Source: Paramoeba atlantica (taxonomy: Eukaryota; Protista; Discosea). Taken from it: a stretch of 64,000 bases of DNA. Position 1 is the stretch's first letter. Every line of letters starts with the position of its first letter. The position numbers were made by a program, and so were the translations under genes. The DNA lies in contig CDRNVI010000040.1 of the NCBI GenBank assembly GCA_977017575.1, positions 744,001 through 808,000 on the forward strand, in the 5' to 3' direction. Of the stretch, positions 5,753 through 46,240 are shown piece after piece. The notes below the pieces were generated by a model. That model was given only the letters and a program-made list of their open reading frames with translations. It was not told the origin of the DNA and did not search any database.

Positions 5753-7210
5753 TCATTTAATTTCTACATCTGCCATAACTACGCAATGTGTGGTTGGTGT
5801 CGGTGCCTTTAAAACTTTATGCGCACATAAACTAGAAGAGAACCGATCCCCAACTAAAATATGATCAAGTTGCCTCGTCACTCTATCTCCTTCATTTTTC
5901 CCTGACTTGAAATGGTCGCCTCCACTGATGGTTTCACTACTCTCTGCAACCTTTGATTTACAGTTATTGAACTTATCACTGGATCCCATCAAATCCAAAG
6001 ATGTATGGCTCTGAATTTTGATATCATCAGACGGTCTCTTTAAGCTTGATTTCCCACCTTTGAGCTCTACTCCTGTTTTCTTTCTGCAAGGAAGTGTGCA
6101 TGTCCATTTGCGTCGACTAGGGCATAGAGAATGTGCTGATTTGCATCCTATTGTTGCCATAAGACCTTTCAACTGGGAAACAGCCGGTGGGTCCATTTTC
6201 TTATTTGTTATTAAGGTAAGGGGTGCGTTGAAGCCCCCCATGACCAACAAAGGTCGTCGCCTCACCTTTGTGCCAACCTCACGGCACGCCTTTGCCACAT
6301 CCCCCAGAAAGGCCGCATGTGCGGTCTCTGAGGAGTCCCTCGTAGGGGCGTAAACATTAAATAGCATACCCTTCCCTCCCTCAAGGGAATATTCAGCTCC
6401 CATAACCCTTCCACTCACCTTCCACACATTTCCTAGTAACCTTCGGCTAACGATAGCCATGCCGTTGTATGAATCCACGCTTGTGGCAGACTGAAGGTAT
6501 ACATGAAACCTATGTCCCAAATATTCGACCTTCCTATAAATAATTCCATCCTCGTGAACATCCTTGGAAAATTTATACCTAGTTTCCTGTAAGCACATAA
6601 TGTCGGCCCCCTTTTCTATCATGAAAGAGAATACCTCACAAAGACGAGTGCATCTTCGAAAGGAAAACTCGTCTTCCCCCTCAAGTTTTAGTGTCGTCAC
6701 GTTCAGTGTGCTCACTGTCGTGTTTCTCCTCTCAGCGGAACCTCTAGGATTCTCCAATTGGCGTCGAGCATGCATGCCACGCAATGCCCGTGGTTTATGA
6801 GGGCTGTGACGGGCAGTTCTTCGGACCACTTTTTTAGGATGGCACACCTGCGCGGCACAGAGAACTACACCAGTAGAAGAAAAGGGGGGGAAATGGAGAG
6901 TTGTGTGCGGACGCTCCTCGTACCGCACGCGGAATGCACCTGAACGACTTTCCGAGGAAAGCAATTCAGGATGCACCCCTAAAACACTCCCCGACCAAAG
7001 ATAAAGTTTGCTACAGGTCTCGTATCTCCATACAACACGAAGCGTTGACCCCAAGCGAGTAGTCTTACAGACTGCGCGCACCGCCCGCTGGCGGAGTTTA
7101 GCAAGCTCTTTCCCGACCGGAGGAAGGAAAACAACTCCCCGAACACGCTTGGTCCGCAAAAGAGTTTCAACGGCCTCTGTCCCCTTCTGCGTGCCGGAAG
7201 CATCCGCCAT
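5753..7210 (-). CDS. N-terminal domain plus APE endonuclease of L-c
   Basis: Starts MADASG and carries APE motifs. GD is mutated to GG in VMGGFNA. Confidence 0.85.
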   Translation of the reverse strand: MADASGTQKGTEAVETLLRTKRVRGVVFLPPVGKELAKLRQRAVRAVCKTTRLGSTLRVVWRYETCSKLYLWSGSVLGVHPELLSSESRSGAFRVRYEERPHTTLHFPPFSSTGVVLCAAQVCHPKKVVRRTARHSPHKPRALRGMHARRQLENPRGSAERRNTTVSTLNVTTLKLEGEDEFSFRRCTRLCEVFSFMIEKGADIMCLQETRYKFSKDVHEDGIIYRKVEYLGHRFHVYLQSATSVDSYNGMAIVSRRLLGNVWKVSGRVMGAEYSLEGGKGMLFNVYAPTRDSSETAHAAFLGDVAKACREVGTKVRRRPLLVMGGFNAPLTLITNKKMDPPAVSQLKGLMATIGCKSAHSLCPSRRKWTCTLPCRKKTGVELKGGKSSLKRPSDDIKIQSHTSLDLMGSSDKFNNCKSKVAESSETISGGDHFKSGKNEGDRVTRQLDHILVGDRFSSSLCAHKVLKAPTPTTHCVVMADVEIK

Positions 7211-7227
7211 ATTTTTTATAAACGAAT

Positions 7228-7490
7228 TATAAAGAATGTGTTCATTATAAAAAATGTGTTCATTATAAAAAATGTGTTCATTATAAAAAATGTGTTCATT
7301 ATAAAAAATGTGTTCATTATAAAAAATGTGTTCATTATAAAAAATGTGTTCATTATAAAAAATGTGTTCTCCTGTCCCACCCTCTCTCTTTTTTTTTTTT
7401 TTTTATAAAAAATGTGTTCATTATAAAAAATGTGTTCATTATAAAAAAATGTGTTCATTATAAAAAATGTGTTCATTATAAAAAATGTGT
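7228..7490 (-). repeat. 5'-terminal 18-bp tandem array of L-c, (aatgaacacattttttat)n
   Basis: About 8 plus 5 units, separated by a duplicated 21-nt piece of flanking DNA and poly-T at 7369-7404. Confidence 0.95.
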
Positions 7491-8738
7491 TCTCCTGTCC
7501 CACCCTCTCTCTGAGAATAGCTCTCTCTGAGAATAGTATGACCCTGCTCGTTTTTTTTTCTCTACATATATACAAAATGCAAACCGTGTTTTTGGTGGCC
7601 AGCTGGCCACTTTTCGACGAAGCACAAACCGTATTTTTGGTGGCCAGCTGGCCACTCTTCCACAACACTCTCTTTTTATTTTTGTTTTTTAGCTGGCCAC
7701 CCTTCCACAACATGGACAGCTGGCCACCCTTCCACAACACGGCCAGCTGGCCACTCTTCCACAACACTCTCCCACCCCCGTGGGACTCACTCAGTGGACT
7801 CACTCAACGTGAGTCACTGCCCCACGTGGCAGTGCTCTGACTCTCTCACGTGCCACTGTAGGTACAGTGCCGATGCAGCCACTACCTTACGTGGCAGTAC
7901 TCTCACTCTCTCACGTGCTACTGCAGCTGCACTGCATCACTGCAGTCACTGCCTCACGTGGCATTGCCTCTCACTCTGCCACTGTATCTACACTGCGATT
8001 ACTGCCTCACGTGGCAGTACACTTACTCTCTCACGTGCCACTGTATCTACACTGCAGTCGCTGCCTCACGTGACACTACTCTTACTCTCGCATGTGCCAA
8101 TGCAGTTGCACTGCGATTACTGCCTCACGTGGCAGTACTCTCACTCTCTCACGTGCTACTGCAGCTACACTTCAGTCACTGCCCAACGTGGCACTACTCT
8201 TACTCTCTCACGTGCCACTGCAGCTACACTGCATCACTGCAGTCACTGCCTCACATGGCAGTGCACTTACTCTGGCACGTGCCACTGCAGCTGCACTGCA
8301 TCACTGTGCAATCACTGCCTCACGTGGCACTGCTCTCACTCTCTCAAGGGCCACTGTAGCTACACACTGTACCACTCGGACCTGCACATTATTTTTCTCT
8401 CTCTATATATATAAAATGCAAACCGTGTTTTTGGTGGCCAGCTGGCCACTTTTTTCAAGAAAAAAAAATCTGAAAAAAAAATCGTTCCGAATTTGTTTTT
8501 TTCGCGATTTTGAGCATATAATTTTTTTTGTTCAAAAATGTCGATGCCGGGAATCGAACCGCGGACATCCAGCGTCAAAATGGAACCCCTTTACCAACTG
8601 GACTACTCAAAGGACTCTCCTTAGTCAACCAGTTTGTCGTATCGCAGACCTTTGCAGACGCACTTTTTTTTACCAAAAGTGTTCTACAATTTGGGAAATG
8701 AGGTCTTTGTAGATGATTTTTCGAGTATTAAAGAGTTA
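7491..8738. repeat. R2 non-coding repeat with internal 27-bp and ~50-bp satellite arrays
   Basis: Collinear with 26590-28408. A direct repeat atatatacaaaatgcaaaccgtgtttttggtggccagctggccact brackets the arrays. Confidence 0.9.
8540..8612 (-). ncRNA. tRNA-like Pol III unit (degenerate; not a folded tRNA)
   Basis: A box TAGTCCAGTTGG, B box GGTTCGATTCC and a TTTTT terminator directly after. The acceptor stem does not pair. Confidence 0.55.
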
Positions 8739-8871
8739 AGGGGTGTCATGTTCTATATAAAATAACTAGCAATTGGTGAGCCCAAAACTAGCAAATGTAT
8801 GTAAATTGTGCCGCTAACATGAAACAATAAAAATTAAAACAGAGAAACAAGCAAAACAAGCTATTTTTTTT

Positions 8872-9033
8872 GAAGACCTTTGTTTTTTTGAAGACCTTTG
8901 CTTTTTTGAAGACCTTTGCTTTTTTGAAGACCTTTGTTTTTTTGAAGACCTTTGCTTTTTTGAAGACCTTTGTTTTTTTGAAGACCTTTGTTTTTTTGAA
9001 GACCTTTGTTTTTTTGAAGACCTTTGTTTTTTT
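8872..9033 (+). repeat. 5'-terminal 18-bp array of L-d, (gaagacctttg[t/c]tttttt)x9
   Basis: Nine units, then the hairpin tttttgaa-tattc-ttcaaaaa and the ATG. Confidence 0.95.
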
Positions 9034-11526
9034 GAATATTCTTCAAAAACATGGCGAAGGCGTCCGGGCCTTGCGAGAATAGTATAGTGAATCTTCTAGT
9101 ACGGTCCACGTTAGGTCTGGGTGTCCTTTTTGAACCAACTTTGGATTTTGATGGACATGCTAAACTTCGCCTGCGTACTGTGATGAGTATATGTAAAATT
9201 CTTCGTCCTGGAGACTGCATCGCGCTGTGCTGGCGATATGCGGGGGCTGCGGAGTATCGGGTTTGTAGGGGGGATGTCACACATAGAGGTTATGGGTCTC
9301 TCTTTCAGCTAGGTCGCTGGCGGGTGAAATACTACCGGCGATCGGAAACGCTTCCTTTCCCGCCGTATGACCCACGTATAGTGCTGTGTGGGGTGCGAAT
9401 TCGGAAACCTCGACGTTCGAATACCCGAAAGAAAGTACGTAAAAATATGGCACTGTGTGGCAAGCATGCTCTTCGCGACAACGACCCTGAAGGGTCTGCT
9501 GTGAGGAAGTATTTATCTATAGGAACTCTTAACACGACTTCGTTGAAACTTAAGGGCGACGACGTTTTCAGACTGAAAGCATCCTCCCGATTCCATGAAA
9601 CATTGCGATATATGGCTCAGAAAGATTTGCATGTTCTGGCTTTAAAGTAAACAAGATTCTCTTTTACTTCTAGCGGTGGGTCTGACATTTTGCGCAGGCA
9701 ACTACGGTACGGAGATAAACACTTTTTCATCTACCTTTTGTCGGCGGTGAATGGGTACAACGGTATGGGGTTTATCTCTCAGCATCCGTTTTTGAAGGTT
9801 TGGAAGGTGAGTGACAGGATCATGGGGGCCGAGTTTACTATAGAAGGGGGGTCGGCCTTTATCATGAATGTATACGGGCCGACGCGCGATTTTTCACAAG
9901 ATGCAATGGAAGAGTTTGACATTTCTCTCACCACTGCGTTTCATGACGCAGTTGGTAAATATTCACGACGGCCAGCTCTTCTCCTTGGAGATTTGAATGC
10001 ACCGCTCACTTTTAAAAATAAGACGGAAGAGGACGCGCTATCAATGGAAAGATTAGAAGGCCTTTTAGAAGGAATAAATTCTAAATCGGGGCACACCTTA
10101 TGCCCAAGCCGCCGTAAATATACATGTATACTGCCGAACGATGCTAAGCGACAGCTCGATCACATTGCAGTTTGTTCGCGCTTTGCGTCTGCCCTACATA
10201 AACATCAAGTTTTTGGCGCACCAACACCAACTGTACACTTTCTGGTGAGAGCCGAGATCAAGATCAAATGGAAAGTTTCCACAAATACCCACAGAAATAA
10301 GATTCCCTGGCTTCAACTTTCTAACCCAGAATATAGTGAAAAATTTGACAAACGAATCTGCGATCATGTCAATGGCGAACTGCACAACAAGGATTTCCCT
10401 TCCTGGGATCTTCTTGCCTCTTGCCTTCGATCGTCTGGCATGGAAATTCCAAAACCACAAAACAAAATATCTCTTGAAATCCATTCGCCAATGGAAACGC
10501 TTGAAGGAGCCGAAACTGGTTATTTGCGCAGAATCTTTGAGCTAAGCAGAAAGCATAAGGACTTCAATGAATTGGTTTTACAAACACAGGTGCCAATAGA
10601 GGAAGCAATAGCCAAATCATGTGATGTCCTGGAAACTAAACTAAAGAAGAATCATGCCAGCCCATGGAGAGCTCTGAAAGAAATATGTGGATTTCATCGC
10701 GCCGATTTTAAGATTTCAGGGACCTGTAATAAACAAAAGCTGGCGGAAATCAAATCATTCTTCGAAGCCTTTGCGGGAGACGCCGGGGGGGACACGAATA
10801 TAAAATTTCCTGAGGCCAAACCATCCCCTAACACGATTAACGACTTCACTTTTACGGAAGAAGAGCTTCAAATTGGCATCTCACACTTTGGTATGGGAAA
10901 ATCGCCAGGCAAAGACGAAATACCAATGGAAGCCTTGAAATGCATAGCTGGTAACGAGTTACTTCGAGATTGGCTGCTATGTGTCATAAACAGAGTTCAC
11001 GATACCGGGATGGCTCCGGATGTTTGGGGTGATGTCTTAGAAGTTCCTATACCAAAAAAGGGTGATTTGGGTCTTCTTAAGAACTGGCGACCTATTTGCT
11101 TAGTGAATTGCATCGTCAAACTAATGAACAGTTTAATCTTGCAACGAATGAGACCTTATGTGGAGCCCGTGCTTCGCGAGAATCAATATGGGTTTCGACC
11201 AGATCGCTCAACAACTCAAGCCCAGGAGATTCTCAACGAAGCAAGAGTTAAAGCTTTGCGGGAAAATGGGCAACATTGGTTTCGTGGATTTTGCAAAGGC
11301 TTTTCCATCTGTTTCGTTTGATGCTATCAGGGCATCTCTGGTAGCATTCCACATTGGCCCCAAGTTAGTAGAAATGATTATGTCGGTCTATCGCAATATG
11401 AGAGGCGTCGTTCGTACACTGTACGGGCTAACGGAAGCTTTCCCCATCACGACAGGAATTCTACAGGGCGACGTTCTCGCACCGTACCTCTTTGTTATGG
11501 TCCTGGATCGAATATTATTTAAGGCA
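8872..11526 (+). mobile_element. Non-LTR retrotransposon L-d, 5' half (N-domain, APE, RT up to the QGD motif)
   Basis: ATG at 9051 (MAKASG), a stop at 9650, ORF 9690..11321 with APE motifs and WRPICLVN, a frameshift near 11270, and an end at DRILFKA where L-e begins. Confidence 0.92.
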
Positions 11527-11613
11527 AAAGATCAAGTTTTTTGTAAAGATCAAGTTTTTTGTAAAGATCAAGTTTTTTGTAAAGATCAAGTTTTTTGTAA
11601 ATTTATTTGCAAA

Positions 11614-14580
11614 ATGGCGGATGCTTCCGGTGCACGCATGCCCACTGCTATTATGAATCTTCTTGCGTGTTCCAAGCTTGATCGGGGGATTCTTTTCCGT
11701 CCTGCGAAGGGTGGAACGGAATGTGCTAAACTCCGCGCGAGGTCGTTAGGACGCATTATGCGACTGCTTTGTTTAGGCGCTAAGCTTGCGGTGGTTTGGA
11801 GGTACGCGGATTCATCGAACTACAGTGTTTGGGAGGGGGTAGTAGAGAGTTGGGTGCCGAGCCGCTGGCTTGTTCGCTACGCTCAGTGTTCGCGATTTAC
11901 GCTTCCGTTCCCTCCATGTAGTCCTCACATCGTCCTCTGTGCTGCTCGGGTTTGTGCGCCTAAGCGTAGACGTCGTTTCAAAAAGCGCTCTCGCAAATAC
12001 AGGGCACAGTCTGGCAAACGTGCTCTCCGTGACTTGGTGGGCCCTGGGGGCCCCGCTGTGAAGAGAATGTTGAGTGTGGGAACCTTGAACGTGACTACTC
12101 TTAAGCTGAAAGGTGAAGACGAGTTTAGCCTACGAAAGTGCGGACACCTTTGCGAAGTACTTGCCTTCATTGGTCTGAAGGGAATAAATATTCTGGGCCT
12201 GCAGGAAACGCGATTCAGATTCCCATCTTCTGAAAAGTCGGATGTCCTTCACCGCAAAGTACAATATCGGAACGCAGAGTTTCACTTGAACCTCATTCCA
12301 GCGCGCGCAAAGGATGCATACAATGGAATGGGATTCGTCAGCACTTTTCCCTTGTCTAAGGTATCTAAAACCAGTGAAAGGATTATGTCGGGTGAATTTG
12401 AGATGGAGGAAGGAGTCGCAACAGTTATTAACGTATATTCTCCTACACGCGATTCTAAGGACGTCGAGGTTACGGAGTTCTACGGAGAACTCGAACGTTG
12501 CTGCTTGAGAATAAGGGAAAGCAACCCGCGTCGCCCATTAATTGTGCTGGGCGACTTTAATGCACCTTTGACACATATAACAAATAAGGATCTAGATCCC
12601 ATTGCGGCCGCCCGTCTTAAAGGACTTTCTTGTTCTATAGACTGTAAGTCTGCGCACTGTCTTTGTCCAAGTAGTCGGAAATGGACATGCGAATTACCAA
12701 ACAAAACTTTAAGGCAGTTAGATCACATATTTATTTGTAGCAGATTTGCATCGGCAATTCAACGACACAAAGTGATCAAGGCACCCATTCCTACTACTCA
12801 CTGTTGTTTTATAGCCAGAATTAAAATTAAATGGCGAGTCAGTGATCCCAAAACGAATACGAATCAGCTCTCGTGGATTTCTTTTCGAAATAGTGAGGAT
12901 AGGAAGAATTTCATCAATAAAGTTCACGACCAATATCGAGCAACCTCGAACTCTTGTCGATCATGGAGCGCTCTCGCACAATATATGAAAAATGCTGTAA
13001 AAACTTTCAAAAAACCGACGAAACGAAATTTGAACAAAGAAGCTGTAAAGGACTCAAAAATACATGATTTGCGCGGTTTATATCACAAGAGCAGAAACAA
13101 AAAGGTGTTCAACGCTCTCGTAATGGAGAATAAAGCGGAAGTTGAAGAGATTATTTCCGACGAATGCTTGGAGATTGAAAAACAGCTTCGTAAAAACCAT
13201 TCAAACCCATGGAGAACGATTCGAAAGATATGCGGGCAATATCGTGATACCTTTAGCACGAACGGAAGCTCACGAAATGATAAACTTAACGAAATTCGAT
13301 CGTACTTCATGAAATTTAGTGGCGCTGATGATGGAGATCCAAATCTTAGCTTTGAACTGCTGCCGCCGCCGTTAGTACCAATATCCGATGCAGCATTTAC
13401 AAGCGAGGAGTTAAGCACATCTTTAGAACATTTCAGAAGAGGAAAAACACCGGGAAGTGACGGAATACCAATGGAAGCCCTTCAAGCTATAGCGGTCCAC
13501 CCTGATCTGAGATCGCATCTCCTGAATATAATCAACCAGGTACACGAAACGGGAGTCACAGAGGAAGCCTGGCGCAACACTCTTCAAATACCCATCCCAA
13601 AGAAAGGAGACCTCACTAACATTGAGAATTGGAGTCCTATACGCGTAGTAAATAGCGTAGTTAAGCTCATGAATCATATGATACTCTCCCGCATTAGACC
13701 CAACATTGAAAAGTCTCTTCGGGGTAACCAGTATGGGTTTCGACCTAACCGAGCGACTTCTGGAGCTCAGATTATCATGAACGAAATAAAAACCAAAGCA
13801 TTCAGAGGACAAGGCCTTTCTGTAGCTTTTATAGACTTTGCTAAAGCATTTCCTTCGGTATCGTTCGCTGCTATTAAAGCTAGTTTGCATGCATTTCGAG
13901 TAGGTCCATGTCTTTCTAAGATGATAATGTCTATATACGATGAGCTGAAAGGCACTGTACGAACTTCTATTGGAATCACAAAACCTTTCCCTATCACTAC
14001 AGGAATACTTCAAGGTGATGTATTGGCGCCTTATCTGTTCGTTATGGTGTTAGATAGAATTCTCAATAAAGCACTAGATGGAAAATCAGACGGGGTTCTT
14101 CTCAGCTCTAGGGGTACAAGAAAGCGGGGTCTTCATGAAAAGCGCCTGAGTGACATTGAGTATGCGGACGATATAGCGTTATTTAGTGACACGAAGAGTG
14201 GTTTGACAAATATGATAGACAATGTAGCTGAAGAGTCACGCAAAGCTAATCTGAAACTAGCCGTCGGAGCAAACAAGACAGCCTGGTTAACTTTTGGTAA
14301 ATCTCAAATGAGCAGCGAGAGCCTGAACAGCAAATTCTCGGGGATGATTCCGAAAGTTACGTCTTACAAACACTTAGGGCATCGGCAGGAAAATGATTTT
14401 ACATCTACAGTTAAAGATCGATTGAAACTAGCTTGGGGATCTCTCTTTCGAATGAATGGTATTTGGTCTTCACCACTTAGCCAGGAGACTAAGCTGCGCC
14501 TCTACGATTCAATAGTATCCGGTGCTAAACTTTGGGACAGGTGCACTTTCTATTTCAAAATCCATGCTCCGAAGAATTGA
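11614..14580 (+). CDS. L-e polyprotein: N-domain, APE, RT
   Basis: MADASG...GTLNVTTL, LQETR, NVYSP, LGDFNA, QLDHI, QYGFRP, FIDFAKAFPSV, GILQGDVLAPYLF, YADD. The track ORF 11158..14580 is an in-frame chimera with L-d. Confidence 0.92.
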   Translation: MADASGARMPTAIMNLLACSKLDRGILFRPAKGGTECAKLRARSLGRIMRLLCLGAKLAVVWRYADSSNYSVWEGVVESWVPSRWLVRYAQCSRFTLPFPPCSPHIVLCAARVCAPKRRRRFKKRSRKYRAQSGKRALRDLVGPGGPAVKRMLSVGTLNVTTLKLKGEDEFSLRKCGHLCEVLAFIGLKGINILGLQETRFRFPSSEKSDVLHRKVQYRNAEFHLNLIPARAKDAYNGMGFVSTFPLSKVSKTSERIMSGEFEMEEGVATVINVYSPTRDSKDVEVTEFYGELERCCLRIRESNPRRPLIVLGDFNAPLTHITNKDLDPIAAARLKGLSCSIDCKSAHCLCPSSRKWTCELPNKTLRQLDHIFICSRFASAIQRHKVIKAPIPTTHCCFIARIKIKWRVSDPKTNTNQLSWISFRNSEDRKNFINKVHDQYRATSNSCRSWSALAQYMKNAVKTFKKPTKRNLNKEAVKDSKIHDLRGLYHKSRNKKVFNALVMENKAEVEEIISDECLEIEKQLRKNHSNPWRTIRKICGQYRDTFSTNGSSRNDKLNEIRSYFMKFSGADDGDPNLSFELLPPPLVPISDAAFTSEELSTSLEHFRRGKTPGSDGIPMEALQAIAVHPDLRSHLLNIINQVHETGVTEEAWRNTLQIPIPKKGDLTNIENWSPIRVVNSVVKLMNHMILSRIRPNIEKSLRGNQYGFRPNRATSGAQIIMNEIKTKAFRGQGLSVAFIDFAKAFPSVSFAAIKASLHAFRVGPCLSKMIMSIYDELKGTVRTSIGITKPFPITTGILQGDVLAPYLFVMVLDRILNKALDGKSDGVLLSSRGTRKRGLHEKRLSDIEYADDIALFSDTKSGLTNMIDNVAEESRKANLKLAVGANKTAWLTFGKSQMSSESLNSKFSGMIPKVTSYKHLGHRQENDFTSTVKDRLKLAWGSLFRMNGIWSSPLSQETKLRLYDSIVSGAKLWDRCTFYFKIHAPKN

Positions 14581-15691
14581 CGTTGAAGTTAACAACATGA
14601 GAAGAATAGTTTGCCAATGCAACAGATTAGATGAATACGGAATGAGCTACCCGAATGCTTCTCTGTATCTTGAAACTGAGCGCTTTTCTACTATACACAA
14701 GGTTCAGAAGGCCAAGCTCGTCGGGCACATGCTGAGGCACTCCAGTGATTTTCAAGAGCTTGTACAGTGGAAACAACGCCCGAATGCACGCAATTTATCT
14801 CCAAGCGAGGCTTGCTTCAAGGATCTTAACATTACACTGGAAGAGGCATTGGTATTTGCGTCAGACCGTGAACACTGGTATCGTCTGACAGAAAAATTGC
14901 GACGTGAACTTGAACCGCTCATAGAATACGAAAAAATTAGGTCAGCAAGGTGGAAAACTGCTCTTGCCAAAGCTAAAAAACAAAAAAGTCCTTCAGAATT
15001 ACAGTTCGTTGAAGAATCAAATGTGCCTTTTCCAGCCTATAAAGCCATACAAATATATACAGATGGCTCTGTTCTGCCGATGAAAAATACGAAAGAGATT
15101 CGAAGTGGCATAGGTATCGTAGTTCTAAAACCACGATGCGAACCCTCACGGATATCCATACCATTGGAATCAGACACTATTGAGCGAGTAGAGATCTTAG
15201 CTTTTCAGCATGCCCTTCTCCAACTGCCGTCAAAACCATGCGCTTGTCTGTTTCATACAGACTCTTACTATCTATGGGACTTCTTTCACAATCTTCGATA
15301 TCGGCGGCGAATCGTTGGCTACAAGGGGGTTTTAAATGGAGATTTGTTCTCCCAGTTAGACGGAAAATTACGGTCCTTAAAACATGATTTGTACTCAATA
15401 TATATGTGCAAAGTCAAGGGTCACTCAGGAAATAAATGGAACGAGGAGGCAGATGGGTTAGCACTGATTGCAGCGCGAAAAGTTCCTCGACCGCCTGAGC
15501 AGAAAAAGAGAAAAACAAGTAATGATTCCAACGCATCACAAATCGACAAATCCTTGGAAAAGCTGATAAAACATAGAACCTTGGAAAAGGGAAAGACGAA
15601 AACCAATCCAGCACCCAAGCGCGGCGCCGAGGCTAAAGTCACTCTGTGCGGGAAGATTGCGAAAACTGGTGGGAAGAGGGCGCCTTCATAG
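14522..15691 (+). CDS. L-e C-terminus: RT thumb, RNase H, K/R-rich tail (frameshifted continuation)
   Basis: AKLVGHMLRH, YTDGS, VEILA, HTDSYYLW, KVKGHSGNKWNEEAD (full D-E-D-D set). Confidence 0.9.
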   Translation: MLNFGTGALSISKSMLRRIDVEVNNMRRIVCQCNRLDEYGMSYPNASLYLETERFSTIHKVQKAKLVGHMLRHSSDFQELVQWKQRPNARNLSPSEACFKDLNITLEEALVFASDREHWYRLTEKLRRELEPLIEYEKIRSARWKTALAKAKKQKSPSELQFVEESNVPFPAYKAIQIYTDGSVLPMKNTKEIRSGIGIVVLKPRCEPSRISIPLESDTIERVEILAFQHALLQLPSKPCACLFHTDSYYLWDFFHNLRYRRRIVGYKGVLNGDLFSQLDGKLRSLKHDLYSIYMCKVKGHSGNKWNEEADGLALIAARKVPRPPEQKKRKTSNDSNASQIDKSLEKLIKHRTLEKGKTKTNPAPKRGAEAKVTLCGKIAKTGGKRAPS

Positions 15692-15799
15692 TAAGAGTTG
15701 GGCGGAAGACGTGTTTCCACCAGCAGGTTCGGAATACCCTGAGGAAGAGTTCAGGAAGATAAAGGAAAAGTATTGTCTTTTTAAAGGAAAAGTATTAAA

Positions 15800-17400
15800 G
15801 GAAAATTGGATTGGATTGGGCGCGGCTCACTGATCTGAATTATGCTGACGATTTGCTCCTATTTGGGAGCGACAAGGAAGACTCATTTTTCATTCTCCTT
15901 CTGAAGCCTGCATGGGCGATATGGGGATCATGGTTGAACAAGCATTGGTCTAGGGAAAGAATCATACTGCATACGGATTCCTGGATAGTTTGGCATTTTG
16001 CAAATGTGATTAGAAAAAAGTATTATTTGATTGATTTTGAAGGCCTTCCAAATAGCGATATATATTTGGATCTGGAACACGCTTTTCGAGGCTTAGAAGC
16101 GCGTAGTGTGCAGCTTTTTGTTTTTAAGGTGAAAGGTCACTGCGGAAATTTCTTTTTTAGGCTCTTCGTTAAACGCGGTGGTTGCTTTCAACTTAGAAGT
16201 CACTCATGCTGCGCGCTTCGCGTTGAAAACTACCGCCGCGTTTAACGAAGAGCCTAAAAAAGAAAATTTAGCCTGGAAAACGGAAAGATTATAGCCAAAA
16301 ATAGCCGAATTTCGGGTACAAATGGGGTCATTTTCGCATATTTTTGCTCTCAGAGCACTAAATCCGACATTTGCGCGTGGCAAATCACTCGGAGGCATGA
16401 ATGGAAGCCTACCGAACGTATTGGGTAGAGAATGCGACTCCAACCATACCATTCTGTCGACACAAAAATGCCCCTTTAGGTCCGAAAAATACTTTTTCAC
16501 CTTTTTTAGTCAAAAATGGGTCATTTTGGGGGGCGCACCACAGTTTGAAGAAGTGATACCTTGCGAAAACAACTGCGTAGAAAGCTAGTGTAGGTCCCAA
16601 ACTATCAAAATACAATAGGGGAAACGATTTTGGAAAAATAGTTTTTTTGTCATTTTTTTCGCCAAGTTGAAATTTTTTTCAAAAAAAATTTTCCGAAAAA
16701 ATCCGAACTTGGCGGACCCGTCCTGCCGATACGCGGGGGGGTCACCCCCGGGTAGGGGGGTGGAAAATGCGCGCCAAGACCCCGGCTACCCGTTCTGCGG
16801 TTTTTTTTCGAAAACTAATTTTTTCGAAAAAATTTGCTCGACCATGCCCCCCCCCCCTGGACCCCCCCCCTGGACCCCCCCCCTGGACCCCCCCCATGGA
16901 CCCCCCCCATGGACCCCCCATTTTTTTCAAATTTTTTTTTCAGTTTTGGACCACCGGAGCCCCCTTTTATATTTTTTTCTTCTATTATATTACTGTGTTC
17001 CTCTTTATATTTTCACTGTTTTTGTTCACTTTTTTTTCAATAATCGAGTGTAGAGCGGTAGTTTTACAACCACCGCAATATTTACAACGATAAGTGCGAT
17101 TTAATAGCCAAAGCAGCTCTTTCGCGCAACTCTTCGAAGAAAAAGCGCAAAACCTCCGCCGCGACAAGCGAAGGTCAAAATTCTGATCTCCTTTCCGAGC
17201 CTGGCATGCCAGAGGTAGCAAGGACCCCTAACACCAGTGCCAATCGCCGCCGCGGTAGTCTACGTGACGGGAATCAAACAGCCCAAACAAAGCGTCGCCC
17301 CCGCTAGAAACCACGAAATGCGGCCACCTACCAGGGCAAGAGAACCGTGAGCTTTATGCAGTGAGGAATGTATTGGGGGGAAATTTCCACTTGAAAAATA
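15800..17400 (+). pseudogene. Internally deleted LINE remnant (YADD joined to RNase H), split by R1
   Basis: NYADDLLL, HTDSWIVW and KVKGHCGN lie before R1. The frame resumes as IYNDKCDLIAKAA at 17080. Confidence 0.8.
16150..17079 (+). mobile_element. R1: ~930-bp non-autonomous element with a long 5' fold-back, a short 3' hairpin and no TSD
   Basis: Hairpin 16147-16269 (aggctcttcgttaaacgcgg...ccgcgtttaacgaagagcct) and 3' end gcggtagttttacaaccaccgcaat. Removing it restores the RNase H frame. Confidence 0.88.
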
Positions 17401-17848: not shown

Positions 17849-18278
17849 GGGCGGTGCGAGTGTAGTTGGTAGACGGTGGGCCTTACAACCTGCAGGTTGT
17901 TGGTTCGATTCCCGCTATCGACAAAACTCGTTACCTGGCGGCCTCACTAAAAAGGGAAAGCGATCAGGAGTGCCTTCAAGGCCCACACCCAACCCCGCTC
18001 CCCTGGAGGACCGACCCTGAACCGTCGAGCTGAACCAGGCTCCAGCGCAGCCGCTAAATTGCGAGCTGCCTACGCAAAGGAGGCTTGAAACACAGCCTAC
18101 ACGATGCAACGGGGTGGACGCCCGTCCTGGTAGCTACGGTTTGGTAGCCGTGCTCTGGCAGCAAGGCGTCGAGTGCCGTCTTGGAAGGGGGTAGCAAGAC
18201 GATGAAGGTCGGTCACCTGAGACTCTACCCTAACGGTTGGCGCTGCAGAGCCCTCTGTGTCTGTGTGTCTGTGTCTTC
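17849..18278 (+). mobile_element. SINE-A, full length, tRNA-derived head (Val-TAC-like)
   Basis: A box tgtagttggtag, loop cttacaa, B box ggttcgattcc. 12-bp TSD tgttgtacttta at 17837-17848 and 18279-18290. Confidence 0.9.
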
Positions 18279-18554
18279 TGTTGTACTTTAATAATGCAAA
18301 AGTGCACCTATGGGCACGTTCACCGGCTCAGTGAGACGGAACCGAGGTTCCCCCAACACTACCTTACACCAGGTCTTGCATACGGAACATTTCGTTCGTT
18401 GACAGTTCTTTATGTATCTCTGCTTGGTTAGCCAACAGGCATTAAGCTCAGACGCCACGTCAAGGCGAGAGATAATTGTCTGAGGACCCTCTTCTCACGA
18501 AGAAGGTATTCAAAATGAATGTGATTTTCGTATCAATTTACTCTAATTTCTTTT

Positions 18555-21649: not shown

Positions 21650-21709
21650 TGATGATATGCGAACTCTCGCAATAGTGGCGTCGTAAAGGTAAAAATTTAA
21701 GAACTCAAG

Positions 21710-28408: not shown

Positions 28409-28670
28409 TCATCTAATGAGCTACTGCTACGTTTTAAAATTTTGAAAAAACTCGATCTCTCGCTTCTTTGAGGGGCATTTTCAAGTTTTGGAATTAACCT
28501 TAGTAAGCGAGTTAGATACTCCGTATCTCCCTCAATAGTATAGTCACCTAATAGTACCCATAGATAGTTCACCTCAGTTCGTTCTGCCCAAGAATAAAGA
28601 ATGAACTTAAAAACAAATAGCATTCGAAATGTTTTTTTGCTACCTAAATATTATAATCCGAATCCAGGTT

Positions 28671-30116: not shown

Positions 30117-30215
30117 CGCACATTGATAATGCATATTAAGCGGCACATTGATAATGCATATTAAGCGGCACATTGATAATGCATATAGCACATTGATAAT
30201 GCATATAGCACATTG
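30117..30215. repeat. gcacattgataatgcatat 20-25-bp tandem array
   Basis: Also found at 43398-43450 and 51917-52165. Confidence 0.9.
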
Positions 30216-33900: not shown

Positions 33901-35734
33901 TAGCGGAAAATCTTGCTTCTTGTCCCCTACAATTTTTCGAATTGTTCTGTACGCGGATTTTGGAGTTGATTTAAGCTCTTTTTCCAGGGCGTCGCACTCA
34001 TTTATAATAGAGGAGTCTAGTTTTTCAGAGAATTCTTTTGATGCAGTAGCAAACATAGTTTTATTGCCCACGATCTTCAGCAGAGACTTCATGACAAATC
34101 CGGATAGATCTGTTTCAGCATCAATGCGAATTTCTTTTGCGTTACTAGTTTTATTGGGAAGACTAGATGCGGACACTCTAACAGCAGAAGAGAGTCTTGT
34201 CCAAGATATTTCGCTGGCCTTATCTATTTCCATTTTTGGCGCGTTTTCGGACTTCTCATCCTCCGACCGAATTCTTTTTGGCACAGATTTTAATGATTCC
34301 TTTACTTTCGAAACAAACTTATTTCGGATTTCATCATTTTTCAATGCCTCCCAAAAAGGCTTTTGTTGAGACAGTTTTTGATTTTTCCATCGAAAATTGA
34401 AGTTCGATGTCAAAGCACAATGTCTGGTAGGTATGGGTGCGATGTGGCATTTTGTGGATCGTATAGAAGAGAAAAACCTTTTGTTATCAACGATGTGGTC
34501 AAGTTGCTTGGTCATTCCCTCTGGATGCCGACGAGTTTTAGGAAACCTATACGTCCATTTTCTTCTTGCACAACAGCCTTCATGCACAGATTGAGCTCCA
34601 AGCGAGCATAGTAGCTTTCGTAACTGTTTTGCACGCTTTGTATAACATTTCCTCCCCCCTGGGTTTAGTAGCGGCGAATTTAGATCTCCACTAATGATTC
34701 TTACCATACCATCATCTTCATAACATGCATCGAATAAGTCTTCGTCAAAACTTTGTTGCGTCGATTTGTTAGCTTTCGCTGTAGGTGAATAGACGTTGTA
34801 AATGCAGGCTTTCGTTTCACCTAGAATGAAGTGTCCACTCATAATGCGATCGCTAATCTTCTGAACAGATAGAGGTTTAGTGCTCAAAAATGCCATGCCA
34901 TTGTACCCGTTGATTGCACTCATCAGGTAGAGGTGAAGTGAGATGCCGTTTAAAAAGAGCTGCCTATGTAAAATAGAATCCTTATCATCAAATTTTAACC
35001 TTGTTTCCTGAAGCGCCATGATGTCAACATGTTGACTCCTCATGAGACCTGCCACTTGATATAGTCTAATCGACTTCCGAAGCGTGAAAGTATCAGTCGC
35101 TTTGACTTTCAAGGTGTCCACTTTTAGGGTACTTATCGTAAAACCCCCTCTCTTAGCATTCTTCTCGGATCCCTGACCCCGGTAGCCACTTCGAGGACAG
35201 TTGGTGCGTTTCCTATTTCGTTTGGATTTCCATTTTCCCAAGAAACCTACCCTACCACCCAGAATTTGAACTCGTTCATCTTTCGGAGGAAACAGGAAAA
35301 GGCGATCATCCACTAAATCATACTTCACTAGACGTCTACCGTCCGGAAGCATAGATTTAACAGTCCCCTCCCACAACCTCGTACGTAAATCATATGACAT
35401 ACTCCAGGCAACAGCAGAGCGTTTTCCAGGAGACAAAAGACATGACATTCGAAACAGGTCCCGCGGCCGGAGTTTGGCTACTCCCCATTTCCGCTTTTTA
35501 GGTAGAAACAGGTTTCCCCGACAACACGTGGCCAATCGGAGTTTTTCTTTGACCGCCAAGAAACCCCAAAAGGTCCGGACGCCTCCGCCAAATTATTATT
35601 AATTGCCATTAATAAAAATTGTTATCTTAATAAAAATTGTTATCTTAATAAAAATTGTTATCTTAATAAAAATTGTTATCTTAATAAAAATTGTTATCTT
35701 AATAAAAATTGTTATCTTAATAAAAATTGTTATC
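30981..35734 (-). mobile_element. Near full-length non-LTR retrotransposon L-f with a (GGTT)n 3' tail
   Basis: ORFs 33169..35559 (N-domain, APE, RT start), 32504..33229 and 31852..32568 (RNase H: YTDGA, HTDSEY, KVKAHNEN). The RT core is deleted. 5' array at 35610-35734. Confidence 0.92.
35610..35734 (-). repeat. 5'-terminal 18-bp array of L-f, (taagataacaatttttat)x7
   Basis: Followed by the hairpin tattaat-ggca-attaata and TTG-GCG-GAG-GCG-TCC-GGA. Confidence 0.93.
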
Positions 35735-35970: not shown

Positions 35971-36184
35971 TCCAAAAAAAAAAAAACCTGAAGTCAGGTG
36001 TGTTCCTGGGTGAGGAACTTCCTCCACTTGAGAGCTTCCTTGGGAAGCCTCATCATGGTGCTGCGCCTTTTTGGCGTAAAATTCTACACCTCACCATTTC
36101 TCAATCCTATTCTATCCTATCCTATCCTAAAACACTTGTTATTAAAACCAGTTAAGAAAACAACCTTTTCTTACGTTGTAACAG

Positions 36185-36795
36185 AAGAAGAAGAAGAAGA
36201 AGAAGAAGAAGAAGAAGAAGAAGAAGAAGAAGAAGAAGAAGAAGAAGAAGAAGAAGAAGAAGAAGAAGAAGAAGAAGAAGAAGAAGAAGAAGAATAAGAA
36301 GAAGAAGAAGAACACGGAGGGCTCTGCAGCGCCAACCGTTGGGGTAGAGTCTCATTTCACCGACCTTCATCGTCTTGCTATCCCCTTCCCAGGCGGCACT
36401 CGACGCCTTGCGGCCCGAGCACGGCTACCAAACCGTAGCTACCAGGACGGGCGTCCACCCCGTTGCATCGTGTAGGCTGTGTCTCAAGCCTTCTTTGCGT
36501 AAGCAGCTCGCAATTTAGGGGCTGCGCTGGAGCCTGGTTCAGCTCTGCGGTTCCGGGTCGGTCCTCCAGGGGAGCGGGGTTGGGTGTGGGCCTTGAAGGC
36601 ACTCCTGATCGCTTTCCCTTTGTAGTGAGGCCGCCAGGTTGCGAGTTTTGTCGACAGCGGGAATCGAACCAACAACCTGCAGGTTGTAAGGCCCACCGTC
36701 TACCAACTACGCCCGCACCGCCCCTACGCCAGCACCGCCCCCTACGCCAGCACCGCCCCCTACGCCCGCACCGCCCCCTACGCCCGCACCGCCCC
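36185..36795 (-). mobile_element. SINE-A with a long (TTC)n tail and a five-fold reiterated 5' end
   Basis: (gaa)n at 36184-36312 on the plus strand. Units tacgcc[c/a]gcaccgcccc(c) at 36708-36795. Confidence 0.92.
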
Positions 36796-37060
36796 TTTAT
36801 TCTCCTCCCATGGGCAAGTTAGTTCAATAATGAGCTCTTTCCCGCCCCTTAGCTTTACCCACCCGTCCGGACGCAGCATACCGCCATTGTCGGCTAGCCA
36901 CGTTGGAGGGAGTCGCATGCCAGGTAGGTCGAAATGAGAGAGAGCTGTATGGGGGGACTCGCTTACATGGTAAGCTAGGGCCCGTAAGATGAAGTCGTGT
37001 CTGAAAGTGTAACGCCCTTGATCTAGAGCAACTCGGCATCCCGCGAGAATGTGCCTTGGG
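36796..37060 (-). pseudogene. HERO-like RLE retrotransposon fragment (CCHC end and endonuclease)
   Basis: An open frame absent from the ORF track reads PRHILAGCRVALDQGRYTFRHDFIL...LRPDGWV...IIELTCPWEENK. Confidence 0.85.
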
Positions 37061-37311
37061 GTTGTAACAGCTTTGGATCCTTAGAAGTTTCATCCTTACC
37101 CCCCACAGATTCTTCCATTACCTGTTGAAGTTCTTTTTTGGTCCCTTTATGCTGCTTCTTTTTCACTTTAGGAGTATTACTGGAACCTAAGTACTCATTC
37201 TCTTCCGAAGGGAGTTCCACGGAACTTACACCTACCTTGAGAGGCGGTGTACCATCCTCAACCGCACATCGCTTAGCCACAGACAACGTTTTAGTCTCAC
37301 CAGACAAAATC

Positions 37312-42489: not shown

Positions 42490-42650
42490 TTGTATTTTTT
42501 TTTTGCGATGAATCAGGGGGGAGAAGTATGAAACGCGGCATTTCCTCTATATTACCCAATACATGAACATGATTTTACAAGCAATCAAATTAGCAATTTC
42601 ACATGTTGTAGCCCAAAACTAGCAATTCAAGCTGTCCTAAAATATTCTTA
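42490..42650. repeat. R4 module
   Basis: Reverse complement of 58330-58500 and similar to 25100-25230. Confidence 0.7.
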
Positions 42651-42666
42651 TAATATTCTGATAATA

Positions 42667-44845: not shown

Positions 44846-44924
44846 ATAAAATCATATATTTCGTCTGAACGATTACCTGACTTTCCTAGTATAATTACTA
44901 ACACAAGTTTACATTTTTGTCATT

Positions 44925-45215
44925 CCTGGCCTCACTCTAAGAGGCTAGGCTGATAACCGACTAGGCCCAGTACTCGGAGGACCGTCCCGGACCCTCCCCT
45001 CAGGGAACCAGCTCCCTTACCCGGCTTACACCTCTTGGGTGAGCCGTGTTGACGTACAGTTCGTCGACGCAACGTGTTGGCAACAGCACGTTGGTGCCGC
45101 CTTGGACAAGCGGAAACTGGTAGAGGACGTCGGCCTCGGAACTTCCAAATCTGTCTGTGAAGGGTCTGGCTTGCCAGTGACCATCCGGAGCAATCCGGAA
45201 TGATTTGGATTTTTT
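44925..45215 (+). mobile_element. SINE-B, 5'-truncated
   Basis: Runs from ggcctcactctaagagg to atgatttggatttttt. Confidence 0.88.
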
Positions 45216-46240
45216 GTTCCCATGTACTGTCTTCCTTTTTCCGTGCAGCGGAAAAAACTAGTTCTTGGAATTCTTTTTCTTTTTTTGGTCCCCGAAACAT
45301 GGCCAGATTACGCCACAGCTTCCCTTTTTGTTCTCGCATTTTCATTTGATCTTCAAATTTACAATCACAGCACAATGTGTAGTTGATATCGGTGATTTAA
45401 GAACCCTATGTCTACTTATGCTTGAAGAAAAACGCTCAATCACTAATACACGATCAAGTGGCCTGCATATGTTTTTGCCTTTTCCCTTCTTGGGCAATGC
45501 GCACGTTTTGCAAAAAAAAAATTGTGCATTTTTTTTTTCCGGCTGGGGCAGAGGGAGTGTGCTGATCTACATCCAATGGAGCAGAGAAGGCCTCTCATTC
45601 TCGATACCGCCGGTAAATCCATGCGATAATTTGATACCATTGCTAATGGTGCATTAGAGTCGCCCATAGGAATTGTTGGTCGCCGACGACCTTTTGCACT
45701 AACCTTCTTCCACGCATGTTCAAGGTCCCCCAAGGACTCCGCATGAGCGGTCTTCGAGGAATCTCTCATTGGCGTAGACGTTAATTAAGGTACCAGTCCA
45801 TTGCTCTAGGGAGCATTGTGCTCTCATCACTCTGGGGCAAGAGGCATAGGGGGGGAAAGGTAATGTCTCTGACGGTCGCTCCTCATATCTCACCCTCGTA
45901 GGCAAACCCTATGTAAAATAGACTTGCAAACAAAGAAACACATTCTCACTAGTGAAGTGCCTCCATACCACATGGAGCCGAGATCCGACTCTAACTAACT
46001 TTATCAGTGCTCGCGCCGCCTTCTGGCGAAGTTTAGCAGGTCCTCTCCGCTGCGGTGGGCGAAAAAGAACCCCTCGAACACGCTTGGTTCGTGTAAGAGT
46101 TTCAAGGAGCTCTGTCCCCTTACACGCGCCGGCAGCATTCGCAATATTTTTATAATCATATTATAAAAATCGTGTTCTTATAAAAATGGTGTTCTTATCA
46201 AAATGGTGTTCTTATCAAAATGTTCTTATAAAAATGGTGT
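45216..46240 (-). mobile_element. LINE L-i 5' remnant (N-domain, deleted APE) with a 17-bp 5' array
   Basis: ATT-GCG-AAT-GCT-GCC-GGC start, homology to L-c 6750-7210, and (aagaacaccatttttat)n at 46160-46240. Confidence 0.85.

Follow-up and report, generated by a model that had tools for sequence, protein, structure and literature searches.

A 17-19-nt module repeated at the 5' ends of Paramoeba atlantica LINEs and its possible renewal during retrotransposition

LINEs in a 64,000-nt stretch of the Paramoeba atlantica genome (contig CDRNVI010000040.1; hereafter, the window) start with tandem arrays of a 17-18-nt unit, which TRF and direct reading find on all full-length 5' ends of the family in this stretch. 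The reading preferred here, to which a probability of about 50% is given, is that this 17-19-nt unit is an inherited 5'-terminal LINE module whose copy number is reset on copying, and which is later multiplied by slippage and by growth at the DNA level. An event at the RNA 5' end in the course of retrotransposition is supported by the sequences of three SINE heads, which are reiterated from their nt 1 with an 18-nt period, one of them in a chimera bounded by a TSD. There are also hints, still unproven, that the RT re-copies the very start of its RNA template.

The LINE family and its 5' arrays

The LINEs have one ORF, composed of an N-terminal domain, an APE endonuclease, an RT, and an RNase H, and at their 3' end a hairpin precedes a (TTGGA)n-type tail. 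Pfam Exo_endo_phos, RVT_1, and RNase_H all match LINE C of the window and the 1363-aa ORF of a copy at L002 6810-2719, and the RNase H catalytic residues D, E, D, H, D align with those of E. coli RNase HI; judged by these domains, the family is an APE-type LINE with an RNase H domain. The RNase H of LINE C is interrupted by a frameshift near 14550. Database relatives are ENA proteins and distant vertebrate matches, and a protein-guided scan of JGI metagenome contigs for the LINE N-terminus gave no match. A SINE-B-like block at 2978-3383 was considered as the 3' UTR of LINE A and rejected as an insertion, because the LINE A ORF stops mid-RNase H there; the partnership between SINE-B and the LINEs is therefore indicated only by their common 3' architecture of a hairpin plus (TTGGA)n.

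The original prediction had placed tandem arrays at the heads of the window LINEs and described them as unlike the LINE 3' tails, and both observations hold: arrays head LINEs A-E, LINE F has one unit plus 5 nt (Table 1), and the arrays have no match in the (ATTGG)n and (GGTT)n tails. Between the array end and the conserved start ATGGCGGATGC lie 11-17 nt in the LINEs of the window except LINE D, whose array ends ~50 nt upstream of a TTG start.

Table 1. Positions of LINE and SINE features in the window
Feature	Position	Strand	Description
LINE A ORF start	5753..7210	-	Conserved N-terminal domain and APE endonuclease
LINE A whole array	7226-7492	-	Period 18; 13 units in two blocks (TRF, direct reading)
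LINE A proximal 5' array	7226..7369	-	8 units GAACACATTTTTTATAAT, then leader, ATG at 7210
Mini-retrocopy at LINE A 5' junction	7370..7511	-	19-nt direct repeats (7370-7388, 7493-7511) flanking A16 (7389-7404) and 4.9 units (7405-7492)
LINE B 5' array	8865..9036	+	18 nt x 9.6 units GACCTTTGTTTTTTTGAA; first unit partial (T8)
LINE B hairpin	9029..9049	+	TTTTTGAA / TTCAAAAA; last unit and leader; closes 1 nt before ATG 9051
LINE B coding region	9051..11526	+	RT domain interrupted by LINE C insertion
LINE C 5' array	11527..11601	+	18 nt x 4.2 units GATCAAGTTTTTTGTAAA
LINE C body	11614..15819	+	N-terminal domain, APE, RT, RNase H, 3' UTR, (ATTGG)3 tail 15805-15819
Reference SINE-A	17849..18280	+	One head GGGCGGTGCGAGTGTAG; TSD TTGTACTTTA
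LINE D 3' end	30981-31001	-	(GGTT)n tail
LINE D 5' array	35609..35734	-	7 identical 18-nt units GATAACAATTTTTATTAA
Chimeric insertion	36175..37070	-	10-nt TSD CTGTTACAAC at 37061-37070 and 36175-36184
SINE-A head reiteration	36707..36795	-	4 x GGGGCGGTGC[G/T]GGCGTAG (18 nt), then native 17-nt head
Foreign fragment 5' of SINE-A array	36796..37060	-	Sense R2/HERO-like REL-endonuclease coding piece; same TSD
LINE E 5' array	46161..46243	-	5 units of 17-nt module GAACACCATTTTTATAA
SINE-B head duplication	58987..59019	-	GAGGTGGCGGAGT, then full head AGGCCGAGGTGGCGGAGTGG; period 18
LINE F (E family) 5' end	60260..60281	-	Single unit; unit's last 5 nt in front

Of 20 independent LINE 5' ends in the window and ~190 kb more of its ENA assembly, 15 have a period of 18 nt, four of 17 nt, and one of 19 nt; the number of units ranges from 0.95 to 266. 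The arrays stop 11-17 nt ahead of the ATG, or ~50 nt in D-type families, and 11 of the 20 start at unit nt 1-2 (P = 2e-6 against random phase). The claim that every intact LINE carries an array fails genome-wide, since the copy at L002 6810-2719, with an intact ORF and the TSD CGGTAACAGC, has less than one unit. A copy in L005, 99.7% identical to it, has 33 perfect units within the TSD ATCACGTGCGGG. DNA-level duplicates retain their short arrays, as found in the four units of the L012 macro-repeat and in L007 compared with its window paralogues (99.3-99.5% identical). At L002 16199-16435, an array is joined to an ORF whose start lies mid-RT, and the array unit mismatches the adjacent body.

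Some other repeats were rejected as LINE heads or as a fourth reiterated 5' end. Arrays with a period of 19-25 nt at 30118-30206, 51919-52167, and L001 9961-10026 adjoin an HTH-type ORF, and a repeat of period 18-19 at 52320-52378 lies inside an RT coding region, the duplication being absent from the L002 homologue. A DNA-level tandem duplication of another length, 32 nt at 57536-57599, is not found in the L007 paralogue.

A common module with a hairpin arm

The units had been regarded as unrelated in sequence, and their common period as a sign of the enzyme. They are instead diverged copies of one ancestral module, GA-N5-7 followed by a T-run and xTAA, with a mean pairwise identity of 0.76 versus 0.62 +/- 0.008 for shuffles, and the argument from period to enzyme falls with this homology. 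The period common to the LINEs is inherited, because the units share the module and its 3' half is a conserved hairpin arm, which pairs with the leader ahead of the ATG. Single-sequence folds and reading of the arms, on which this hairpin is based, give an equivalent of the LINE B structure in all LINE families; RNAalifold on a MAFFT alignment of the leaders returned no structure, the alignment being out of register at the short AT-rich arms. Several families have TATAAA-like motifs inside the unit, and hundreds of LINE junctions show no variation in the first G of the unit. The 2-3-nt repeat after each array, which had been likened to an alignment register, is an artefact of an arbitrarily chosen phase, so that a partial unit was read as a register. 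Phased by their ends, the arrays finish on a whole unit with zero overlap, and the first bases of the leader are unrelated to the unit.

Growth of arrays in DNA and a mini-retrocopy

Repeat addition does not hold as the only source of the arrays, given the 115-unit array, in which variant units occur in duplicated blocks (higher-order repeats), and a 266-unit satellite of 4.8 kb; the arrays of L008 and L011 prove expansion at the DNA level. In an 87-unit array, some variant units differ in T-run length only. Multi-unit RNAs probably exist, because the TSD-flanked poly(A) mini-retrocopy at the LINE A 5' junction consists of ~5 units alone, and the paralogous empty site (26597-26615) has one copy of the 19-mer. 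The original prediction counted transcripts that already hold arrays against repeat addition by the RT, and to that extent the mini-retrocopy, in suggesting multi-unit RNA, weakens it.

Reiterated SINE heads

The SINE heads resemble tRNAs and bear no relation to the LINE unit; ARAGORN and Rfam give no tRNA match for them, and the Rfam search of the window has zero matches, ribozymes included. The first helix of the SINE-A fold is preceded by nt 1-16 as an unpaired leader. When JGI metagenome contigs were scanned for exact-pattern matches to the SINE-B head, the result was negative. The two head repeats predicted in the window, SINE-A x5 and the SINE-B duplication, were recovered, and a second SINE-B head duplication, also of period 18, is located at L006 545-582. 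All three independent reiterations restart exactly at head nt 1 with a period of 18 nt. They are three events among ~15 heads, ~80% of which are single, and the ~14 kb of SINE sequence examined showed no further tandem duplication.

The SINE-A reiteration is part of a chimera, which contains, in order, the REL-endonuclease fragment, five heads, the SINE-A body, and a (TTC)n tail (36183-36312). Its junctions have an extra G relative to the single-head copy, the unit being 17 nt plus this G, and the variants along the array follow the pattern G G T T G, which is unexpected from recopying one RNA end. In SINE-B, this base would be T or absent, according to where the RNA truly starts. LINE arrays look templated rather than composed of 17 nt plus one untemplated base, because their first G is invariant, whereas the SINE junction base varies (G, T, or none). 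The SINE-A chimera may have been made by another RT, without RNase H, as it carries an R2/HERO-like fragment.

Origin of the repeats

According to the preferred reading, the unit would be the inherited 5'-terminal module of one LINE superfamily, and would include the RNA start, placed there because the first G or A of the module is where arrays begin, together with the T-rich arm on the 5' side of a hairpin closing just ahead of the ATG. Copy number would be reset at each new copy, and not merely inherited, by a reiteration of the head at copying of the kind directly seen on three SINE heads. After two or more units exist, in-register slippage may add others, and long arrays would later behave as minisatellites or satellites that grow via unequal exchange. 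A step at retrotransposition is favoured because the 99.7%-identical sisters carry less than one and 33 units, each in its own TSD, and because the arrays start in phase (11/20). A start site in every unit would equally yield in-phase starts and one-unit progeny of a 33-unit parent. What survives of the proposed slip-back of the RT at the RNA 5' end is thus an event at retrotransposition, and not the telomerase-like register, the origin of arrays by the RT only, or the period argument; that the RT makes the repeats is what we infer, and it may also set the 18-nt step.

A possible but less probable explanation is that the units are inherited promoter monomers only, each a putative core promoter/initiator in which transcription may start, so that progeny carry from one unit to the parental number and regrowth occurs only by DNA replication slippage and unequal exchange. 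The homology and phase of the units, the TATAAA-like motifs, the multi-unit RNA implied by the mini-retrocopy, and the growth in DNA proved by higher-order repeats and the 4.8-kb satellite agree with it, but 33 units that are 100% identical, in a copy only 0.3% diverged from a one-unit sister, do not, as DNA-level duplicates of similar divergence retain their unit numbers. The SINE-head duplications would then be a separate, substrate-driven oddity in which the repeated piece ends in a D-loop-like or unpaired 5' leader region; the unpaired SINE-A nt 1-16 and the DNA duplications of other lengths (57536-57599, 52320-52378) are consistent with this, whereas the failure of ARAGORN and Rfam to call a tRNA speaks against tRNA-like heads, and three duplications from exact nt 1 with equal period are unlikely as random DNA events.

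More doubtful is a mechanism in which an RNA oligomer of ~17-18 nt, left at the 5' end by the final RNase H cut, is reused as acceptor for repeated end-to-end jumps. With the RT at the RNA 5' end, the leftover oligomer would be too short for another cut, and each jump would add the terminal piece and 0-1 extra base; the distance invoked is the 17-18 bp of retroviral RTs (PMC3627382). If true, this would give the LINEs and their SINEs a telomerase-like, self-renewing 5' end. It is unlikely that the RT literally acts like telomerase, translocating back by ~18 nt with a 2-3-nt overlap and making all arrays de novo on any RNA to offset 5' erosion. The period of 17-19 nt, constant over ~16 unit variants and two SINE families, and the precedent of a bacterial RT whose successive template jumps generate tandem repeats (PMC12039810) speak for it, but homology accounts for the LINE period, the overlap is zero when phase follows the array ends, reiteration is lacking from ~80% of SINE heads and from several young LINE copies, and neither the block duplications inside arrays nor the mismatched unit at L002 16199-16435 fits. 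Long-read assembly or sequencing artefacts are hardly credible as a source: the T-run-only variants of the 87-unit array could be read error, but the independently named contig L010 repeats window 2981-17132, with the arrays of LINEs A, B, and C, at 99.97% identity and 4 gapped positions, and arrays are consistently placed ahead of the conserved ORF at 20 loci.

Relation to known systems

Mouse L1 elements of the A, Tf, and Gf types have tandem 5' monomer promoters with monomers of ~200 bp. In the arrays described here, too, the units stand in tandem ahead of the ORF at the very 5' end; their number varies by copy, and they are uniform inside a subfamily and distinct among subfamilies. In contrast to the mouse monomers (reviewed in PMC7778262), the units are 17-19 nt long, include a hairpin arm, and occur in <1 to 266 copies, and their promoter role is putative. 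The trypanosomatid L1Tc/ingi elements possess Pr77, a single 77-nt copy with an HDV-like ribozyme, common to their non-autonomous partners, which is thought to supply the elements' own transcription start (PMC3383444, PMC4748587). Both are short conserved 5'-terminal modules on protist LINEs with APE, RT, and RNase H. The present one, unlike Pr77, is 18 nt long, tandem, and absent from the SINEs, and appears to lack the Pr77-type hallmark, the Rfam ribozyme search of the window being negative.

End-to-end template jumping and chimeras are known from the R2 RT in vitro, from U6/L1, from a tripartite Magnaporthe pseudogene (PMC2104539), and from R2 5' junctions (PMC2718515). The SINE reiterations resemble these cases, as their junctions lie exactly at the donor RNA 5' end (3/3 at nt 1) and several RNAs are joined in one TSD in the SINE-A chimera; extra untemplated nucleotides may also be present at the junctions. 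Known cases, however, join different RNAs once or twice, and we know of no description of repeated return to one 17-18-nt terminal piece. Chimeras are also known to form by another route, in which RNAs are ligated before they are reverse-transcribed (PMC6789731).

RTs of the telomerase/DRT2 type copy an RNA that serves only as their template and has defined boundaries and an alignment region (PMC12039810). If the arrays here are RT-made, one short template stretch would similarly be copied repeatedly into tandem DNA, but the template would be the 5' end of any retrotransposed RNA, and the LINE arrays, with zero overlap, show no alignment region. CR1/L2/RTE-type LINEs have 3' microsatellite tails, which arise from RT slippage at initiation. 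The (ATTGG)n or (GGTT)n at the 3' end of the present LINEs is comparable and indicates that their RT already allows slippage in register on short repeats, but the feature described here differs from such tails, with their 4-6-nt units, in its 5' position and its 17-19-nt units.

Significance

LINEs lose their 5' ends nearly every time they are copied, and it has long been asked how they keep a functional one. The present family is a compact test case, in which an 18-nt module goes from 1 to 33 copies between 99.7%-identical sister insertions, and its partner SINEs suggest that reiteration with an equal step is possible on arbitrary RNA 5' ends. Should the RT make the repeats, a retrotransposon enzyme would have a new activity, the addition of repeats, and satellite DNA could arise from a transposon head by a simple route; otherwise the arrays would still be an unusually small and clear tandem 5' promoter/leader module, with a hairpin arm in each repeat.

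Tandem heads of the LINE family

Tandem Repeats Finder and reading of the sequence place arrays of 17-18-nt units before the LINE ORFs, as the original prediction had described (Table). Five of the six arrays in the window lie immediately 5' of the conserved start of a long ORF, ATGGCGGATGC(T/G)TCCGG, and a sixth LINE copy, at window 60244, carries one unit plus 5 nt. According to Pfam, the LINE ORFs encode an APE-type endonuclease, an RT and an RNase H, and their N-terminal alignment contains a further conserved domain, which has no assignment.

A profile search with this N-terminal domain returned 16 proteins, all from contigs of the ENA assembly ERZ24900291, and twelve stretches of this assembly (L001-L012, about 190 kb) extended the sample beyond the window; in scans of JGI metagenomes no relatives came to light. 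Since L010 is 99.97% identical to window 2981-17132 and L007 is 99.3-99.5% identical to window 49770-60654, these contigs come from the genome of the window itself or from one nearly identical to it. The EF-1alpha encoded at L004 6826-8178 is identical to a protein that EukProt lists for Paramoeba atlantica (MMETSP0151).

When each locus is counted once, the window and the assembly stretches provide 20 independent LINE 5' ends, of which 15 have an array period of 18 nt, four of 17 nt and one of 19 nt. The low half of these ends comprises 0.95, 1.1, 1.3, 2, 4.2, 4.9, 5, 5.4, 5.9 and 7 units per array, and the high half 9.6, 13, 13.9, 15, 26.5, 33, 59, 87, 115 and 266. A further LINE copy is cut off within its leader, the stretch between array and ATG (L003 7839), and an orphan array is found without its LINE (L005 1979-2043). 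At L002 16199-16435, 13.9 copies of a 17-nt head unit (GAGAACCTTTCTTTTTA) are fused to an ORF that starts partway through the RT domain, and this unit has no match to the adjoining body; the locus is either a copy with an internal deletion or a truncated element that has captured an array.

Other repeats and elements occur in the same DNA. Subterminal arrays of 19-25-nt units (ATGCATTATCAATGTGCTAT-like; window 30118-30206 and 51919-52167, L001 9961-10026) were rejected as LINE heads, being unrelated to them, and adjoin an HTH-type ORF. The minus-strand ORFs at window 19781-22783 suggest a Helitron-like element: they match a PIF1-like helicase and, weakly and below threshold, Rep (E 0.008).

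Table. Location of arrays, element ends, duplicated heads and hairpins (L numbers, stretches of ERZ24900291)
Feature	Location	Detail
Period 17-18 array	window 7226-7492	Tandem Repeats Finder
Period 17-18 array	window 8865-9036	Tandem Repeats Finder
Period 17-18 array	window 11527-11601	Tandem Repeats Finder
Period 17-18 array	window 35609-35734	Tandem Repeats Finder
Period 17-18 array	window 36707-36795	Tandem Repeats Finder; SINE-A head
Period 17-18 array	window 46161-46243	Tandem Repeats Finder
LINE 3' microsatellite	window 15805-15819	(ATTGG)3
LINE 3' microsatellite	window 30981-31001	(GGTT)n
LINE 3' microsatellite	window 50291-50311	(GGTT)n
LINE 3' hairpin and (TTGGA)n end	L002 2519-2560	
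LINE 3' hairpin and (TTGGA)n end	L002 14330-14360	
LINE 3' hairpin and (TTGGA)n end	window 15780-15819	
Leader hairpin	window 9029-9049	
Leader hairpin	L003 9969-10000	example of the equivalent place in every family
Leader hairpin arms		5' TTTTTGAA; 3' TTCAAAAA
Leader hairpin arms		5' TTTTGTTAA; 3' TTAACAAAA
Leader hairpin arms		5' TTTTGTAAA; 3' TTTGCAAAA
Leader hairpin arms		5' TTTTTATAAT; 3' ATTATAAAAA
Leader hairpin arms		5' TTTTGTTTTAA; 3' TTAGAACAAAA
SINE-B duplicated head	L006 545-582	AGCGGAGGTGGCGGAGT T AGCGGAGGTGGCGGAGTGG
SINE-B duplicated head	window 59019-58987	GAGGTGGCGGAGT AGGCCGAGGTGGCGGAGTGG
Mini-retrocopy	window 7370-7511	4.9 LINE-A head units, then A16, between perfect 19-nt direct repeats TCCTGTCCCACCCTCTCTC

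Homology of the units and the leader hairpin

In the phase where most arrays begin, the unit consists of GA, 5-7 variable bases, 4-7 T and (A/G)T(T)AA(A), for example GAACACATTTTTTATAAT, GATCAACCTTTTTGTAAA, GACCATCTTTTTGTTAA and GACCTTTGTTTTTTTGAA. Across 16 unit consensuses, pairwise identity averages 0.76, versus 0.62 +/- 0.008 in shuffled units, and by this comparison the LINE units are diverged copies of a single ancestral module. Given this descent, that they are equally long calls for no separate account, and the earlier argument from a period shared by unrelated sequences falls, the units being homologous. In the GA-first phase, every array closes on a whole unit and the leader then opens with unrelated bases; the 2-3 nt that had been taken for an alignment register are a partial unit, which arose from the phase chosen.

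Single-sequence folds pair the T-rich 3' half of the last unit with the leader in a predicted hairpin of 7-11 bp, which in most families closes 1-3 nt short of the ATG and in the D type (the kind of LINE D) farther upstream. The arms covary between families, with A-T pairs replaced by G-C in a compensatory manner, and in several families they include G.U pairs, which are C.A mismatches on the opposite strand; as these work in sense only, the hairpin points to a structure of the sense-strand RNA. RNAalifold on a MAFFT alignment gave no support for the hairpin, and because the arms were misaligned there, the covariation rests on the single-sequence folds and inspection.

Reiterated heads of SINEs

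Two short element families, SINE-A and SINE-B, also carry reiterated heads. SINE-A usually starts right after the TSD with GGGCGGTGCG(A/G)G(T/C)GTAG TTGGTAGAC, the reference copy being that at window 17849 (TSD TTGTACTTTA). The arrayed SINE-A head reads four times GGGGCGGTGC(G/T)GGCGTAG, then GGGCGGTGCGGGCGTAG and then TTGGTAGAC, which amounts to the first 17 nt and an additional G, five times. This copy is part of a chimera limited by a perfect 10-nt TSD, CTGTTACAAC (window 37061-37070 and 36175-36184). The 265 nt that separate its array from the 5' TSD (window 36796-37060) correspond, in sense, to an R2/HERO-like LINE in its PD-(D/E)xK endonuclease region (RHD...RPDG...ELTCPWE). Because this fragment stands 5' of the SINE-A array within one TSD, the chimera shows that its cDNA departed from the 5' end of the SINE RNA and went on along another RNA.

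SINE-B usually starts with (T/G)AGCGGAGGTGGCGGAGTGGCAAG, and its head is duplicated in two independent copies, both with a period of 18 and an upstream piece that ends ...GGAGT. Single heads are found in about twelve other SINE-B and two other SINE-A copies. About 14 kb of SINE sequence showed no other tandem duplications, which ties the head events to the RNA 5' end.

At the 3' end, SINE-B has a 5-bp hairpin and then (TTTGGA)n (e.g., window 28690-28730), and the LINE has a 5-bp hairpin, CCGAC...GTCGG, a T-rich stretch and TTTTGGATTGGATTGGA, of the (TTGGA)n type. The hairpin sequences differ but the architecture is alike, and because it is common to both, SINE-B is probably mobilised by the present LINE family; the tail of SINE-A is (TTC)n. 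By eye, the SINE heads are tRNA-like, with A-box and B-box motifs, and neither ARAGORN nor Rfam called them. In the fold of SINE-A, nt 1-16 form an unpaired leader ahead of the first helix.

Probable reset and drift of the unit number

The number of units in an array is probably set anew at each retrotransposition, and it changes further at the DNA level. The copy at L002 6810-2719, which has an intact ORF of 1363 aa with all three domains, is flanked by the TSD CGGTAACAGC and begins ATCAACC..., with less than one unit. Its sister in L005, 99.7% identical to it over the first 677 nt and 99.6% over 3.6 kb, carries 33 units of 100% identity within the TSD ATCACGTGCGGG, with four additional bases (ATTA) at the junction, and a third sister, at L001 6791, carries 1.1 units. 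Sisters of the D family, at 97-98% identity, have 0, 7 and 15 units. Copies duplicated in DNA retain short arrays, with 5.4 units in 4/4 copies of a 3.4-kb macro-repeat in L012, and the arrays of L007 and the window paralogues agree. Eight of the 20 ends start at the G of the unit and three at the next A (P = 2e-6 against random phase); at the remaining nine, 2-13 nt of an incomplete unit come first.

In long arrays, evolution at the DNA level is also clear. The array of 115 units at L008 3940-6006, only 87% matched, contains higher-order repeats in which long blocks of variant units recur in the same order. The head unit has turned into satellites there, at L011 2016-6801, a 266-unit satellite of 4.8 kb that starts in phase and is interrupted by another insertion, and at L012, where the macro-repeat, which includes SINE-A and the LINE head, makes up the whole locus.

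A mini-retrocopy made of head units is located exactly at the 5' junction of LINE A, and a paralogous empty site (window 26597-26615) has its 19-mer in single copy. It resembles a poly(A) retrocopy whose source was a short transcript of head units only, which suggests that multi-unit, polyadenylated RNAs exist. A large composite repeat with internal satellites of 16, 27 and 59-67 nt is present twice (window 7505-8737 and 26597-28409), and one of its copies has LINE A inserted at the edge.

Origin of the arrays

The original prediction, in which the RT may slip back about 18 nt and recopy the RNA 5' end, loosely in the manner of telomerase, holds in part: SINE heads are reiterated from the RNA 5' end and unit numbers differ between near-identical sisters, while its shared-period and register arguments are lost. 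The favoured model, with a probability of roughly 0.5, has two layers. The unit would be an inherited functional head that contains the RNA start and one hairpin arm, and the RT, on reaching the RNA 5' end, would re-copy the terminal 17-18 nt and so reset the unit number of each copy; such reiteration is seen on the SINEs. Once two units are present, in-register slippage could act, and later the arrays would drift and at times explode into satellites through unequal exchange. A polymerase-to-RNase H spacing that sets the 18-nt step, the last cut leaving a reusable 17-18-nt RNA as jump acceptor, is a rather improbable refinement. The catalytic residues of the LINE RNase H are present, and in HIV-1 RT this spacing is 17-18 bp, with cleavage 17-18 nt behind the primer end (PMC3627382).

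Several observations count against the two-layer model: the first G of the LINE unit is invariant and the extra bases of the SINEs are variable, the variants in the SINE-A array follow the order G G T T G, and the mini-retrocopy implies a multi-unit polyadenylated RNA. The R2/HERO-like fragment of the chimera suggests, in addition, that this event may be the work of another RT, one that lacks RNase H. The main alternative, considered the less likely of the two, is an array of promoter monomers with a start site in each unit, which would regrow only in DNA, the SINE events being due to the tRNA-like substrate. It is favoured by ordinary DNA-level tandem duplications of other lengths nearby, such as a perfect 32-nt duplication at window 57536-57599, which is missing in the 99.4% identical L007 paralogue and is a recent event at the DNA level. 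Another, at window 52320-52378, is a messy duplication of 19/18/9/12 nt, all ending CCTACAG, within the RT gene of another retroelement, whose homologue in L002 is without it.

Relation to known systems

The 5' monomers of mouse L1 are much longer units than the 17-19-nt LINE heads. The Pr77 head of trypanosomatid L1Tc/ingi is single-copy (PMC3383444, PMC4748587), whereas the heads here are tandem. Among the closest known processes are the template jumping and junction variation of R2 (PMC2718515), chimeric retrocopies formed via double template jumps (PMC2104539) and the repeat-adding RTs telomerase and DRT2 (PMC12039810). The literature searched, which is not exhaustive and does not establish novelty, described neither tandem LINE heads with 17-19-nt units nor an RNA whose first 17-18 nt are copied over and over. 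As a whole, the feature stands closest to the known LINE 5' monomer arrays and to RT template jumping.
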